64,000 nt of DNA from Dicyema japonicum (taxonomy: Eukaryota > Animalia > Dicyemida), in contig RDEW01000002.1 in the NCBI GenBank assembly GCA_011109175.1, forward strand, positions 2,308,244 through 2,372,243. Reading direction: 5' to 3'. This document shows, in pieces, positions 4,276 through 48,515 of this stretch. The notes beneath the pieces are model-generated. The model did no database searches, had not been told where the DNA came from, and saw nothing but the letters and a program-made list of their open reading frames with translations. A program made the translations under genes and the position numbers. Numbering within the stretch: position 1 is the first letter of the stretch; each line of letters opens with the position of its first letter.

Positions 4276-6932
4276 AAAGCAGTGCATGCTGTTGAGGCTC
4301 TGATCTCCACCATCAAGGATGTTTTGAAGCCTGACGCCGTTTCTTCGGAATGGGTTAAATTTTTCCTTTTCCCGTCACTCACTCTTGGGATCAGCAGACC
4401 AACGGAAGCATCCACTTCTCTCGCAACGAATATCAAAAAGAGAGTTAGACTGTTTCTAAATGAACATAAAATGTCACTTACTGCTTTAAAATCAACTCAA
4501 ATTGCACCCCGGAGTTCAAAGCGTCCGAAAACGGAGGAACTTCGCTTAATAAAGAAACTAATCAGGATGAAACTTATGGAAGGCGATATTCGTGGTGCTG
4601 TACGGCTATTAGTTTGTGATCCTGGGACACTTAAAAACACCCCTGAAACGCTCATGTCTTTACGAGAAAAACACCCCGGATCCCCCGAAGACTTGAGAAC
4701 TATAAAACCTTTCCACGAGGAACAATTGCTCGCCTCTAACGAAGATATAATCACCTCCCTGCGTTCATTTCGTCCTAGTAGTGGAGGTGGTATTGATGGC
4801 TTGAGACCCGGTCACCTACGTGATCTCACAGCTCCAATGATGGGATCTGTCGGAAAGGATCTTTCGAATGTTATTTGCGAACTGATCAACAAAATTCTTT
4901 CTGGATGTTTGTCTCCTTTCGGTCGAGATATGTTATTTTCTGCTAATCTTGTTGCTCTCCGAAAGCCTGACGGCGGTGTCAGACCGATTGCTATTGGAAA
5001 CGTGTTCAGGAGACTTGCAGCTAAAGTCGCTTGCTTTTCTGGGGTTCAAAGATTACTTCCTATTTTCAGTCCTATACAGATGGGCGTTGGAGTTCGTGGC
5101 GGTGCAGAGGCTTGTGTCCACGCAGTGAGGAGTTTTTTCACGTCGTCGTCCGAATGCAAAGAGGACGTTGTTGTCTGCAAAGTAGATCTTAAGAACGCAT
5201 TTAATTCCATAAGGAGAGATCATTTATTGGAGTTATGCCAAAAATATTTACCACATATTTGGGAGATTGTTCGCCTTTCATATTCTAATCCATCATCATT
5301 GGTTTTCCACGATGCCATCATTAAATCACGAACTGGTGTTCAACAAGGCGACCCACTTGGACCTCTTCTCTTTGCTTTGGGGATCCAGGGAGTAGCCGCA
5401 TGCTTAAAATCACCTTTAAATTTATGGTATTTGGATGACGGAATCATTGGTGGACATCCAGATACAGTTTTGGAGGACGTGCGTCGTTTGATATCTGAAT
5501 TCGAAGCGATTGGCCTTTCTGTCAACAAGGCCAAATGTGAATTAATCAAGATCAATTTGAGTCCCGATCTGACTACTTTCTACAATGACCAGTTTAAATA
5601 CACTCTCGAAAATTATGCATCGGTTCCAGTTGGGGAGTCTCTGTTCCTCGGTTCTCCTATATTCGAAAACCAAATTGTGGACGTGTTTAAAGAAAGGACA
5701 ATAGAGCTCGGTACTTTTGAGACCCGTTTGCGGCATGTTGACAACCATATTGCCCTCTTCCTATTGAGACACTGCTTGTCCATTCCAAGATTAAACTATT
5801 TACTAAGGACTGCACCATGTTATAAGTGTGATTCCCTTTTAATGGAATACTCTGATTGCCTCAAAAGATGTACTGAATTCGTACTTAACGTTTCTCTTGA
5901 TACCCCTGGATGGATACAGACTCAATTACCGATATCATTGGGTGGAATCGGTCTTACTACTCCCTGCCAAATTGCTGGCCCGGCGTATTTTGCCTCAAAA
6001 CTTTCATGCAAAAACCAAGTGGACTCAATTCTTTCAAAGCTTCCATCTCGGAAACTGTCCAATGACTTGGTTGAATACATGGACGTGTGGGAAGTGAAGG
6101 GCTTAGCGAGCCGCGTAATCCAGACCAACAATCGTCTTGGATGATCCATAGATGGAATGCTCTGGCATCCAACCTAGTCAGCCGGCTCTCTGGACATCGC
6201 CTGGATTGTTTCCAAAATTCGAGGGAGGCGGTTGATGGATCTTGGCTTGGGGTTTACCCATGTCAAGAAGTTGGTGGATTGTTGGATGATGACTCACTTC
6301 GTACAGCTGTATGTCTACACCTCGGATTGCCTGTTTGCACCAAATCGAAGTGCAAATGTGGCTGTCTATCGGACGAACTGGGTCTCCACCTCCTCTCATG
6401 CCGGAGCGGAATTGGCAGATCTTCTCGACATTCGGCAATGAACGGCATCATTAAGAGGGCATTAGAATCGGCTGGATTCCGTTGCCGGATCGAACCGACT
6501 GGTCTATTTGACAACGGAAGACGCCCTGACGGCATGACCTCCTTTCCTTTTGAGCGAGGGCGAAACCTTGTATGGGATGTGACCTGTGTCTGCTCTTTCG
6601 CCCCAAGCAAAAAAAATAATTCACCGGGCAGACCTTCTTCTCAAGCAGAGGAAGTAAAAAATGCTAAATATTCGGATATCAGCGACAGGTACATTTTCGC
6701 ACCTGTCGCGATTGAAACTTCGGGGAACTTTGGCCCTAAAACGCTGAAGTTCCTGAACCATTTGGAAAACTACTAACTGACAAAACTGGTGATCTTCGTG
6801 AGACGAGATGGCTCAAGGAGAGGCTCTCGTTGGCTGTTGTCCGTGGGAATAGCTTGTGCATCTCCCAACAGCTGAATTAAAATTAACTATTCTTTTTCCT
6901 TTTTCCTAATAAAATACATTATAAAAAAAAAA
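4276..6932 (+). mobile_element. CRE-clade non-LTR retrotransposon (RT, Cys/His knuckle, RLE endonuclease), 5'-truncated, poly(A)-tailed
   Basis: ORFs 4282-6144 and 6087-6776 plus a tail to 6880: GIDGLRPGHL, KPDGGVRPIAIG, QMGVGVRGGAE, GVQQGDPLGPLLF, WYLDDG, CKCG..HLLSC, RH, RPDG..WDVT, VRGNS. Followed by AATAAA and an A10 run. Confidence 0.92.
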
Positions 6933-7648: not shown

Positions 7649-9661
7649 ATGAAATACGTATTTGTCACCGGAGGAGTCGTCAGTGGTCTTGGCAAGGGAG
7701 TAGCCTCGTGTTCATTGGGAGTGATCCTCCAATCCATAGGCTTTTGCGTGACAGCCATCAAAATCGACCCTTATCTCAACGTGGATGCTGGGACATTCTC
7801 CCCTTATGAGCATGGTTGAGTCAGTCTCTCATTCAAGGAGAGGTCTTTGTCCTCAATGACGGCAGTGAGGTGGATCTCGACTTGGGGAACTACGAACGCT
7901 TCCTGGGGATCTCCCTAACAGGGCAGCACAACATCACCACAGGAAAGGTGTACAAACAGGTCATCGAAAATGAACGAGAAGGGCGATATTTGGGCAAAAC
8001 TGTACAAAGTCAGTTCAGTTTCTTTATATTAGTCGTCCCCCATATTACAGATCATATACGAAAGCTCATTGAAGAGGTCTCACATCTCCCCGTAATGGGC
8101 CGCGATGGGAAAGAGAGGGTACCCGACGTCTGTATAGTCGAGGTTGGGGTATCTCTATAAGTCCAGTTTGGTGGAACTGTGGGGGATATTGAAGGAATGC
8201 CATTCTACGAGGCAGCTCGTCAAATGATGTACCACATGGACAACGAGGATGTCTTCACTGTGCATGTCTCGCTGGTCCCCGAAGTATTGATGTGCTCTCA
8301 ATCTAGCTAAACACAACGGGGGAGCAAAAAACGAAACCGACTCAGCATTCGGTCAAAAAACTGAGGGAGGTTGGACTAATTCCTGATTTGGTTGTCATCA
8401 AACTGACTCGTAGCTGATTTGTAGGTCCACCAATCCTCTGGATGAGAACATTCTCCGGAAAATCTCCTCATTTTGCTACACAAAGCCCTTCAACGTACTC
8501 ATTTAGTTTACTGGAGGTTATAAACTGCCATGACGTCGACAGCATTTATCTGGTCCCTTCTTTGATGATGGAACAGAGTGTGGACAAGATCCTGATCAGT
8601 CGCCTCAATCTGTTCCCCCTCGTGCTGGCTGGGAAGATCCCCTCTTCTGAGAACCTGGCTAAGTTCAGAGAATTCGGCAAAAAGTACCCTTTTCTGCTAA
8701 AACAAGGCATAATTCCGTCAGAGAACCCACCAGAATAGCTGTGGTAGGCAAATACACTAAAATGGGGGACACCTATCTCTCCCTTTACCAGGCTCTCCAA
8801 CGAGCTTCCTTGCACGTGGACAGAAAGTTAATTATCGAAGTTGTTCGGTGTGTTTTACCTAGAAAATTGAATCCACGTGTCTCGAAGACCCAGCCACGCA
8901 GATTACGAGAAGAATGGAGAACTCTGAGTTCTTGCGAGTTATTTTTGTGATTTATTGGATCTAGTGGTATTTTGGTCCCCCCTGGCTATGGGGAGAGGGG
9001 AACTGAAGGAATGATCAAGGCGGTGAGATTTGCCCGCGAAAATAATGTCCCCTTTTTTGGTTCTGGCTCGTCCTTACTGTAGGGATCTGCTTTGGAATGC
9101 AAATGGCTGTGATTGAGTTTGGGAGACACGTGTGTCACCTGGAACGTGCAAATTCCACGGAATGTGATGAAGACACTCCTCACCCTGTGGTATCTGTTAT
9201 GGCTGACTCAAGATTATCATCATGACTGAACACAACCAGGGACAAATGGGGGGCACTATGCGACTTGGGAGTCAGAAATCGGTGTTTTCGCAGGAATACC
9301 CGGACTCCATTTCAAGTCACGTGGTTATCTAAGTCGTAGAGAGGCTGTTCAATGACGCTGAGTGCATTTTTCAACGTCACAGACATCGCTATGAGGTCAA
9401 CCCCAGTTATGTGGGGACCATGACTGAGAAGGGACTCCAATTTGTAGCAAAAACGCCGGATTCTGTAAGAATGGAAATTGCTGAGCTTCCCAAGTCCGGT
9501 CTGTCTGTTGATTTACTTTAGTTCACCCTTATTTTGTTGGGGTTCAGTTTCACCCCGAGTTCCTGTCCTCTGTTGAACGCCCATGTCCATTTTTTGTAGG
9601 ATTTGTGACTGCTTCTAGTGAGCATACTAGGAAGGGTCACGTGCTCACTAATGGTTGTTGA
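7649..9661 (+). CDS. CTPS: CTP synthase, complete, 13 mini-introns of 22-27 nt
   Basis: Spliced: [36 protein letters not shown]|[47 protein letters not shown]. First intron is 7815-7837. One local frame problem at 8889-8912. Confidence 0.96.
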
Positions 9662-10140: not shown

Positions 10141-11040
10141 TTTTAAATTCCCGACCAATAGATTTTTTGGATAAAGAACATCCTAAAACTCACTAATTTT
10201 AAGTAGAACACCATAAAAACCAATTTTCAGCATAATTGATAGATTTTTAGGGATTTTCTGAAATCATTAAAAATTATTGTTTTATAGAGGGTAAATTGAA
10301 AACCCAATCTTCATTCCTGATTACTCGTATACACGTGTTGAAAAGTTGACTAAAACAGTAAACCTCTACCTTGATCACCAGAATCCAATTGAGCGAACTG
10401 AGCCCTATTCACCTCGGAGTTGGAATTCCTTACGGATGTGAATCGACAATTCATTCAGTCCAAAATTTCATTGCCAGTCCGTCTGACACTCAGGATGTAA
10501 TAAATAGTTAAAACTGGATATCCGCGATGCTTTCAATAGCATTCGCAGAAATGGAATCAAAGAGGCAAGTGATTCCAGTATCCCGGAAATTAGCAGGATG
10601 ATAAAACTCACACACCCTCTAATCCAAGACTGGAGTCCAACAGGGCGACTTGCCAATAAATATGAGAAAGTACCAGAAGCATTGCGATAGCAACTAATTA
10701 AAGTACCGCGAATGCACTTTAAATCTTTATTTCCGTTGGAAGTAGAGGAAAAAAAGAGGTTTAAAAAAACGTCGACACATAAAGATCGTTTTTGCTGACA
10801 ATTTTTCCAAGAGATAAACATTGCGATTTCTGTGTGTAGGAATAAACTCTGGTTGTGCCTCAAGAGTATTTAAGAATTCAGACCCGGGGGTAGTAAATTC
10901 GTTATCATTATTGTACAAACGAGTGGGTGCATTTCCTTACAGATCGTCGGGGTGGGGGGAGTGGGAGAAATGAGTTCTCAAATCTGGGAGCAACCAGCGG
11001 TGGTTAACTGTTTGTGTTAAAATTATCAGAATTATCAAAA

Positions 11041-11341
11041 TTAGTAGTCCAAAGTACAAACTTTGCAGGTAACAGGGCATATTTGCTTCAGGTTTTCATC
11101 ACAGTTTGATCTGACGTATAAGCAAATTGAGGCCCAATTTCTACACTCTGAAATAATTAAATGTCATTTACCGCCACATAAGTTACAGGTTTGCATACAC
11201 AAAAGGTTTCTCTGTGTCGATTCAATTCCACAGTTTATATTTTTACAGTATTTTGGTCCTAAAAGATCATAGCAATCTATAAACAGTACAACATTTACTG
11301 TCAACGATTAGGATCAATCCAATAATGAACGAAACAAACAT
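11041..11341 (-). CDS. Small secreted protein with two tandem ShK (ShKT) six-cysteine domains, 84 aa
   Basis: Exons 11341-11299, 11276-11172 and 11147-11041, with GT-AG introns of 22 and 24 nt. Protein: MFVSFIIGLILIVDNCYDLLGPKYCKNINCGIESTQRNLLCMQTCNLCGECRNWASICLYVRSNCDENLKQICPVTCKVCTLDY*. Hydrophobic leader and two CxxxCxxC ends. Confidence 0.88.
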
Positions 11342-11614
11342 GTATTTATTTTTTGAAGGTGAAATTTTAATTAAAAAATAAATTAATTAATTTTAAAAAA
11401 TCTATCTTACATATAATTTCAAATTTCCTACAGGAAAAATTAATTCACACTCTTTTTTCTACAACCCTTCTCGACACTTTTCTTTTTTGCTGTAGAACTT
11501 CCATTTCACGCCTATTTGTCACAGCAGATTCTCCGTGTTTTATGAACATGGAACTTTTGAAGATCTTCGAAAGACGGTAAGGTGGAATATGTTGCTGAGC
11601 AAAGGAAATCAGTA

Positions 11615-45968: not shown

Positions 45969-46074
45969 TCCGTAAAAGACGCAATCAATATTTTCTAATT
46001 ATAAATAATTATGAACTGTATAATATATTTTCAAATTTTAAATAAATATGAATAAATTACATACATTTACATTA

Positions 46075-46834
46075 ATGAGACAGAAATGTACTAATTTTGT
46101 AAATTCTAGTTTATAAAAGAGTTTTCAGTTTAGTCTTTGTTTCCATTGGACTATACTTGCTTATTTCGTTAGTCAAGCAAATTCCTTCAATTCTATCCAC
46201 CAAAGAGGATTGTGAATATGAGGAAAACACAGATTCAGACTATACGTACTTTTTGACGATCATCGTTACTTCAAGTTTACAATTTAATCATTATAGGTCC
46301 GCAAAACTTTGATCGCCGACGAGTCATTAGGAAAACATGGGGGAATGTTTCATTTTACGACCGTCCAATAAAACTCCTGTTCTCGATCGGCACAAACTTA
46401 AAATTCAAGGAGGGTATAAATCGGGAAACTTTGGAAGAAAACGACATTTTGTATATCACAAAATTCCACGACAGATACGAGAAATTAACCCTCAAGTCAC
46501 ACTGGTCGTTTAAACATATGTTTTCCACTTTTTAATTCTAAGAATCAATTTTAACACGAAATTCGTGATGAAAACCGACGACGATGTGTTCCTTAATGTG
46601 AGAAGTTTGATCAAAAAGTTGGAAATGATCAAAAAGACTGAATTCATTTTCTGTAAGAAAACCTACTCAAAACCGATGCGGGACCCACGGATGAAGTGGT
46701 AACAAATTTGGTAACCAGGTATATCTCGAAAAAAGAGTATCCGGGCAAATTATTTCCCCCGTACTGTCAAGGTTCTGCTTATGCGATGCCGGTGGGAACA
46801 CTCAGAAAAATAATGGCAACTTGCGACTTTAAGC
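46075..46834 (+). CDS. GT31 family, copy 3, truncated by the assembly gap
   Basis: Intact spliced frame up to the N run at 46835-47400. Confidence 0.85.
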
Positions 46835-47400
46835 NNNNNNNNNNNNNNNNNNNNNNNNNNNNNNNNNNNNNNNNNNNNNNNNNNNNNNNNNNNNNNNNNN
46901 NNNNNNNNNNNNNNNNNNNNNNNNNNNNNNNNNNNNNNNNNNNNNNNNNNNNNNNNNNNNNNNNNNNNNNNNNNNNNNNNNNNNNNNNNNNNNNNNNNNN
47001 NNNNNNNNNNNNNNNNNNNNNNNNNNNNNNNNNNNNNNNNNNNNNNNNNNNNNNNNNNNNNNNNNNNNNNNNNNNNNNNNNNNNNNNNNNNNNNNNNNNN
47101 NNNNNNNNNNNNNNNNNNNNNNNNNNNNNNNNNNNNNNNNNNNNNNNNNNNNNNNNNNNNNNNNNNNNNNNNNNNNNNNNNNNNNNNNNNNNNNNNNNNN
47201 NNNNNNNNNNNNNNNNNNNNNNNNNNNNNNNNNNNNNNNNNNNNNNNNNNNNNNNNNNNNNNNNNNNNNNNNNNNNNNNNNNNNNNNNNNNNNNNNNNNN
47301 NNNNNNNNNNNNNNNNNNNNNNNNNNNNNNNNNNNNNNNNNNNNNNNNNNNNNNNNNNNNNNNNNNNNNNNNNNNNNNNNNNNNNNNNNNNNNNNNNNNN
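46835..47400. other. Assembly gap (566 N)
   Basis: Run of n characters. Confidence 1.
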
Positions 47401-47504
47401 CGTAAAAGACGTAATCAATATTTTCTAATTATAAATAATTATGAACTGTATAATATATTTTCAAATTTTAAATAAATATGAATAAATTACATACATTTAC
47501 ATTA

Positions 47505-48515
47505 ATGAGACAGAAATGTACTAATTTTGTAAATTCTAGTTTATAAAAGAGTTTTCAGTTTACTCTTTGTTTCCATCGGACTATACTTGCTTATTTCGTT
47601 AGTCAAGCAAATTCCTTCAATTCTATCCACCAAAGAAGATTGTGAATATGAGGAAAACACAGATTCAGACTATACGTACTTTTTGACGATCATCGTTACT
47701 TCAAGTTTACAATTTAAACATTATAGGTCCGCAAAACTTTGATCGCCGACGAGTCATTAGGAAAACATGGGGGAATGTTTCATTTTACGACCGTCCAATA
47801 AAACTCCTGTTCTCGATCGGCACAAACTTAAAATTCAAGGAGGGTATAAATCGGGAAACTTTGGAAGAAAACGACATTTTGTATATCACCAAATTCCACG
47901 ACAGATACGAGAAATTAACGCTCAAGTCATACTGGTCGTTTAAACATATGTTTTCCACGTTTTAATTCTAAGAATCAATTTCAACACGAAATTCGTGATG
48001 AAAATCGACGACGATGTGTTCCTTAATGTGAGAAGTTTGATCAAAAAGTTGGAAATGATCAAAAAGACTGAATTCATTTTCTGTAAGAAAACCTACTCAA
48101 AACCGATGCGGGACCCACGGATGAAGTGGAAACAAATTTGGTAACCAGGTATATCTCGAAAAAAGAGTATCCGGGCAAATTCTTTCCCCCGTACTGTCAA
48201 GGTTCTGCTTATGCGATGCCGGTGGAAACACTCAGAAAAATAATGGCAACTTGTGACTTTAAGCAAAAGATAAGATTCGAAGATGTTTTTTTCACAGGTG
48301 ACTTATGCTTACAATTCGAAGGGATATGTACTGTCAATACCACCGTAGAATTAATCAACGATTCGGGATTTAGTTCTTATTTTGCTCACAAAAATTTTTG
48401 TAGATACAAAAATTTGATTTCCTCTCATTATTTAAATTCGAAACAGATAAGAAATGCATGGATGTTCACTTATGGGAGACTATACATATGTTCGCTTGTT
48501 TTTGACTTCTTTTAG
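47505..48515 (+). CDS. GT31 family, copy 4 (KIDDD variant; intron-4 donor reads GA instead of GT)
   Basis: 1011-nt span with the same exons and a more diverged C-terminus. Confidence 0.82.

Follow-up and report, generated by a model that had tools for sequence, protein, structure and literature searches.

A predicted double-ShKT gene split by two ultra-short introns in the dicyemid parasite Dicyema japonicum

Whether a small disulfide-rich protein is encoded at a locus of Dicyema japonicum where no sizeable open reading frame can be seen, and what such a protein would do, are the questions raised by a short segment on the minus strand of the window, the 64,000-nucleotide stretch of genomic DNA analysed here. 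The list of open reading frames offers at this place only fragments of 24 and 46 amino acids and nothing that covers the second of the two domains described below, in line with the sequence-only reading, according to which a gene for a leader and two ShK-type domains is hidden from the ORF track by two mini-introns. When the minus strand of positions 10900-11460 is read, three exons and two GT..AG introns are found that together give a predicted product of 84 codons, and the leader and each of the two domains lie on an exon of their own with phase-1 introns between them, as had been claimed. The elements of the gene are the following.

11299-11341, minus strand: exon 1, 43 nt, with the ATG at 11341-11339, holding 14 codons plus the opening base of an Asn codon completed in exon 2
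11277-11298, minus strand: intron 1, 22 nt, GT..AG, phase 1
11172-11276, minus strand: exon 2, 105 nt, ShKT-like domain 1 (domain reference 11173-11274)
11148-11171, minus strand: intron 2, 24 nt, GT..AG, phase 1
11041-11147, minus strand: exon 3, ShKT domain 2 (domain reference 11044-11145), followed by a 4-residue tail and the TAA at 11043-11041

By the ORF list, the ATG is the first start codon downstream of an upstream stop, and the stop codon of the gene lies four codons past the last Cys. All searches, translations and dN/dS calculations were run exon by exon, with the domains treated singly. The locus is matched by four sequencing runs, all of which come from one 2019 study and one sample, probably the genome project itself, and they do not amount to independent support.

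Pairs of GT and AG placed 20-27 nt apart are common by chance, and independent support for the gene model was therefore sought in paralogs. Introns of 22 and 24 nt are nevertheless normal in this genome, since the published introns of dicyemids are short and a gene in the same window, used as an internal control for intron size, has introns of nearly the same length. The control is a CTP synthase gene at 7816-8738 on the plus strand (Pfam CTP_synth_N, E 1e-34), with GT..AG introns of 24, 23 and 23 nt. The median intron of Dicyema sp. is 27 bp (PMC6543705), and among animals no introns shorter than those of dicyemids are known outside some myxozoans, D. japonicum ranking with the shortest-intron animals (PMC13644364).

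Open reading frames for reverse transcriptase flank the gene at 4282-6776 on the plus strand (RVT_1, E 1.5e-14) and at 12294-13687 on the minus strand (E 3.5e-25). The nearest large ORFs belong to these retroelement copies or remnants, with RVT_1 at 4282-6141 on the plus and at 13010-13687 on the minus strand; a 131-codon ORF close to the gene matched no Pfam family. Further away, an uninterrupted ORF of 224 codons at 15145-15819 on the plus strand scores 23.8 bits against HtrL_YibB (PF09612; E 4e-5), marginally below the cut-off of 24.1; PF09612 is a bacterial family, and an uninterrupted ORF is unusual for an intron-rich animal genome. The G+C content falls sharply to 0.235 at 46001-48000, compared with 0.32-0.45 elsewhere in the window.

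The paralogs were found when each domain was searched in six frames against the entire genome, an approach that also bears on the size of the family, which the sequence-only reading had wished to see determined. The family is small and consists, apart from the gene in the window, of one locus on contig C112, which also carries the window and from which the locus is 389 kb away, and a tandem array of six on contig C168.

G000:C112:1929500-1931000 (at about 1930 kb), local 1041-730, minus strand: the paralog closest to the window gene, with a 55-nt leader exon and introns of 21 and 24 nt
G000:C168:368500-378499: tandem array of six genes of the leader, domain 1 and domain 2 type, the leaders at local 1114, 1667, 2589, 3876, 4683 and 5962

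The order leader, intron, domain 1, intron, domain 2 is common to the window gene, the C112 paralog and the array. The leader exon has the same 43 nt and the same phase as that of the window gene in five array copies and 42 nt in the sixth, which is a fragment. Intron 1 of the paralogs is likewise a phase-1 intron, 21-24 nt long, which splits the Asn codon directly before the first Cys, and intron 2, in the copies where it was read, is a phase-1 intron of 24 nt at the same position. The domain-2 exons of the paralogs end 0-6 codons past the last Cys, and in the C112 paralog the cysteines of domain 2 are spaced as in the window gene and followed by a short tail that ends in Tyr. Between the window gene and its paralogs, 44-55% of the residues of domain 1 are identical and 37-48% of those of domain 2. 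Despite this divergence all 12 Cys are retained, and so are the T-C-N-x-C end and a Tyr ahead of Cys 2 that does not vary. The dN/dS ratio between the window gene and the paralogs is about 0.47-0.49 by the Nei-Gojobori method, exon by exon, at a dS that is saturated or near saturation. Because the leader exon, the intron positions and phases and all 12 Cys recur in the paralogs, the gene model is more than a chance arrangement of splice signals, and the shared layout predicts a genuine-looking, stand-alone protein-coding gene at the window locus.

Two of the six array copies look intact. An in-frame stop and a frameshift affect one copy each, a further one does not extend beyond domain 1, and the last is the fragment mentioned above. 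The window gene, for its part, stands alone and has diverged strongly. Judged from these sequences, the window gene, the C112 paralog and the C168 array, which has the appearance of birth-and-death evolution, form a lineage-specific family.

Other models of the window gene were considered and rejected. An intron 1 of 40 nt with its acceptor at 11259 would cost the gene its first Cys, a residue that follows directly on an intron of 21-24 nt in every paralog. Splicing onward into a larger enzyme such as an astacin or a tyrosinase, which the sequence-only reading had put forward as the case that would speak against it, is contradicted by the stop codon, as this follows closely here and in all paralogs, while the start codon is the first after an upstream stop.

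Another reading would be that the locus is an unexpressed or decaying copy that is intact in appearance only. Retroelement fragments lie on both of its flanks, the stop has no canonical poly(A) signal close by (AATAAA does not occur in the bases read 3′ of it, unlike in the array copies), and several of the C168 copies are broken, with an in-frame stop in one, a frameshift in another and two truncated or fragmentary. However, at about 50% residue divergence from every paralog the window gene has retained an open 84-codon frame, both GT..AG pairs and their phases, together with the invariant Tyr, the T-C-N-x-C motif and all 12 Cys; at an average rate of loss, the retention of all 12 would be expected about once in several thousand cases by our own estimate. 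Decay therefore appears an improbable account of the locus.

The nature of the two domains is indicated first of all by their cysteines. Domain 1 has the spacing C-x8-C-x4-C-x10-C-x3-C-x2-C with a C-x-D start and domain 2 the spacing C-x6-C-x6-C-x7-C-x3-C-x2-C; both were claimed in exactly this form and are found so upon translation, and both show the six-Cys ShKT pattern of about 35 residues with a C-x3-C-x2-C end. The six Cys are invariant over 22 aligned domains of the genome representing all three subtypes. The search for Pfam ShK (PF01549), which had been proposed for the spliced protein and was run per domain, leaves domain 2 just short of recognition, with an E value of 0.0016 and 19.4 bits, 1.5 under the cut-off of 20.9, and five of its paralogs pass the cut-off in a genome scan with 21.0-25.4 bits, whereas domain 1 has no match, either alone or with its intron-encoded flanks. 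Weak matches to Pfam ShK are seen in four of the nine domain-1-type members (best E 0.0055), and the PF01549 scan of the genome itself (67,542,437 bases in 377 contigs) did not list the window locus.

The domain-2 family profile aligns to the canonical ShK set of the genome over all 30 columns in hhalign (E 6.9e-5, probability 63%). For domain 1 a profile of nine sequences was needed, because one of five sequences gave nothing in the PDB other than chance matches to ribosomal S27a zinc ribbons. Against 177,635 PDB sequences, the seven best matches of the nine-member profile are all ShK-family peptides, namely Hui1 (E 2e-4), entries of ShK itself (E 1.4e-3 to 6e-3), and then AsK132958 and ShKT-Ts1. 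The best of these alignments are gapless with the six Cys in register, and the one to ShK confirms the claim that the spacing of domain 1 equals that of the sea-anemone toxin. In the ESM Atlas, where each domain was queried as a single sequence, PF01549 is found in 22 of the 30 nearest clusters for both domains, the top scores being 0.95 (domain 1) and 0.91 (domain 2). A profile search of 1.84 billion representative proteins, in which a 34-residue query faces a very high threshold, returned no record of the family, no outside relative above that threshold and four matches, all of them short, partial and spurious alignments to repeat or Sushi proteins.

An AlphaFold2 model of domain 1, built from an alignment of 22 sequences covering all three subtypes, has a mean pLDDT of 90.4, a confidence that depends on the hand-assembled alignment and on the canonical ShK domains included in it; with five sequences the pLDDT was 59.7 and the model was not used. 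In an exhaustive comparison of the domain-1 model with 48,161 representative PDB chains, eight chains reached Z≥2, all of them ShKT peptides (NaK1, aurelin, ShKT-Ts1, Acan1, OspTx2a, BmK1, the toxin-like domain of MMP23 and AeTX-K), with an rmsd of 1.5-2.1 Å over 31-33 residues. For a domain of only 34 residues the Z scores are necessarily low as absolute values, and Foldseek found no matches in the PDB for the same 34-residue model. The structure prediction, carried out for domain 1 only, thus points to the ShKT fold that the sequence-only reading had anticipated, and domain 1 is predicted to adopt it. The family profiles and the language-model neighbours, together with the predicted fold in the case of domain 1, support a ShKT-like character of both domains.

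The second-best structural match of domain 1 is aurelin (Z 3.5, rmsd 1.7 Å over 33 residues), which could suggest an antimicrobial peptide of the aurelin type, that is, a ShKT fold acting on membranes. The net charge of the window protein is low, unlike that of cationic antimicrobial peptides, and the match reflects the shared fold only, which makes an antimicrobial role highly improbable.

A route of the protein out of the cell is suggested by its N-terminus. The leader had been described as short, about 14 amino acids, and 14 codons are indeed read; the residues are mostly hydrophobic, with a mean Kyte-Doolittle hydropathy of 3.1 over residues 2-12. The leader of the window gene has no basic n-region. 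A hydrophobic leader is present in all seven copies looked at, and the conservation of twelve Cys in a disulfide-dependent fold also argues for the secretory route. On the strength of this short hydrophobic leader conserved among paralogs, the product of the window gene is putatively secreted. In the proposed course of events, the two ultra-short phase-1 introns would be spliced out to give the 84-codon precursor, the hydrophobic leader would take the precursor into the ER, where six disulfides may form, three per ShKT domain, and a compact two-domain extracellular ligand of about 70 residues would be released. In the ShKT superfamily the disulfides connect C1-C6, C2-C4 and C3-C5. The double-ShKT reading as a whole, comprising a genuine gene, an 84-codon precursor with a hydrophobic leader and two ShKT-fold domains, and extracellular release, we regard as probable.

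The likeness of domain 1 to ShK raises the possibility of an effector that is directed at the host and, like ShK, AcK1 and BmK1, blocks K+ channels, here those of the host (Kv1 or KCa type). The spacing of domain 1 and its gapless alignment to ShK and Hui1 are in agreement with this, stand-alone helminth ShKT peptides block Kv1.3 (PMC9699480), gene families engaged in host interaction typically undergo tandem duplication together with birth and death, and the dN/dS within the array is 1.3-1.6, a ratio derived from very few changes and with broken copies included. The residues on which block depends are nevertheless different. The dyad pairs a pore Lys with a following Tyr, Phe, Leu or Ile, and the blockers ShK, BmK1, AcK1 and ScK1 all keep the Lys (PMC9699480). 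In the window gene, the positions aligned to Lys22-Tyr23 of ShK hold T-Q, and a Lys at the position of Lys22 is absent from all nine domain-1-type members. The sequence-only reading had noted the T-Q, the retention of the following Arg and a K-Y pair before the second Cys, all correctly; of the K-Y pair only the Tyr is conserved in the family. The net charge is about +1 per domain, with three basic and two acidic residues in domain 1 and four basic and three acidic in domain 2, as opposed to about +6 for residues 3-35 of ShK. Finally, the same domain type occurs inside large multi-domain proteins, as would be expected of a generic module. Since the dyad lysine and a strong basic charge are missing, classical pore plugging of Kv channels in the style of ShK is unlikely for the predicted product, and the step from ShK spacing to Kv1-type block taken in the sequence-only reading is not supported. 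The window protein, as far as its sequence tells, belongs to the ShKT superfamily and not among its dyad-type Kv blockers; host K+ channel block as the role of this protein appears quite unlikely. A spacing like that of a toxin is in itself no predictor of an activity like that of a toxin.

The use of related domains elsewhere in the genome is relevant to what else the protein might do. Canonical double-ShK genes are found on contigs C201, C312 and C168 and have no intron between their domains and longer loops; the one on C168 adjoins the tandem array at local 8379-8624 (G000:C168:368500-378499). Triple-ShK genes are present on C112 and C279, and a larger multi-ShK gene exists in three near-identical copies.

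L008:1250-1800, minus strand: larger multi-ShK gene
L005:1300-1850, plus strand: larger multi-ShK gene
L006:1300-1850, plus strand: larger multi-ShK gene

The gene encodes an acidic region rich in Asp and Glu and then a series of three or more ShK-type domains, each on its own exon, with phase-1 mini-introns between them. The middle domain, located between canonical ShK exons, has an x8-x4-x10 spacing identical to that of domain 1 of the window gene, and the domain-1 type accordingly doubles as a module in larger predicted multi-ShK proteins of the genome.

Such usage would fit a real secreted protein with a role within the dicyemid itself, whether in its matrix, in adhesion or in signalling between cells in the course of the life cycle. 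ShKT is a common extracellular module across Metazoa, including morphogenetic astacins (PMC9848320), and the near-neutral charge and the lack of toxin-type residues in the window protein are consistent with an endogenous function. The genome of D. japonicum comprises 67.5 Mb in 377 scaffolds with 5,012 genes (PMC6736024), and it speaks against a purely endogenous role that a gene set so strongly reduced still keeps several stand-alone copies and a tandem array. An endogenous role is a possible explanation, to be held tentatively. The stand-alone double-ShKT family might alternatively be a dicyemid invention for host manipulation that acts on channels or transporters of the renal epithelium via a surface other than the dyad, a suggestion that we consider speculative and rather unlikely. 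Dicyemids inhabit the renal sac of cephalopods (PMC12953835), and given this habitat host haemocytes would be a less obvious target. Our best guess is that the protein most likely acts by binding outside the cell, on the surface of the parasite or where the parasite meets the host renal epithelium.

Several known peptides and domains come close to the predicted protein. ShK and other type-1 sea-anemone toxins (1roo, 1bei, 4z7p) and Hui1 (2n6b) have the same Cys spacing and C-x-D start as domain 1, and the Arg after the dyad and the basic-T-C-x-x-C end of ShK and Hui1 are also kept in domain 1, the profile E values being 2e-4 to 6e-3. In contrast, ShK has a Lys-Tyr dyad in place of T-Q, is strongly basic and not near-neutral, and originates from the venom of a sea anemone and not from a spiralian parasite, and the window gene adds a second domain. 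NaK1 (7l2g), Acan1 (6dri), AcK1 (2md0) and BmK1 (2mcr) are likewise small ShKT peptides or domains from parasites, and NaK1 is the best structural match of domain 1 (Z 3.8, rmsd 1.5 Å over 33 residues, 36% identity). BmK1 we take to be the C-terminal domain of a metalloprotease, with which the molecule name of 2mcr agrees. These helminth peptides differ from domain 1 in their nematode origin and longer inter-cysteine loops, and the Lys is present in those of them that are known as blockers, whereas NaK1 and Acan1, like the window gene, differ from ShK at both dyad positions (PMC9699480).

The wider ShKT/SXC superfamily (PF01549), which includes the MMP23 and astacin-linked domains, shares with the window gene the six-Cys module and the predicted fold (MMP23, 2k72, Z 2.6), as well as the placement of one domain per exon with phase-1 introns and the multi-domain extracellular use seen in this genome. 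Unlike the MMP23 and astacin-linked members, the window gene has no enzyme or other domain attached, and its single domains score at or below the Pfam threshold. ShKT proteins occur widely in Metazoa and figure prominently among the secretions of helminths, and their presence in a dicyemid is expected in kind. None of the papers in the library searched links dicyemids to ShK domains, and the ShK domain is mentioned neither in the publication on the D. japonicum genome nor in its supplements (PMC6736024).

The gene also has a bearing on how the dicyemid genome is read, for introns of 22-24 nt hide short modular genes from ORF-based scans, and intron positions conserved among paralogs can recover such hidden genes without RNA data. 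Dicyemids are parasites of about 30 cells with about 5,000 predicted genes, and to our knowledge nothing is known of the molecules with which they face the cephalopod that they live in. As a small and tandem-duplicated family of disulfide-rich proteins that are apparently secreted, the genes described here are an obvious first candidate for study on host renal tissue, and the host-manipulation reading, if true, would provide the first molecular effector known for the phylum.
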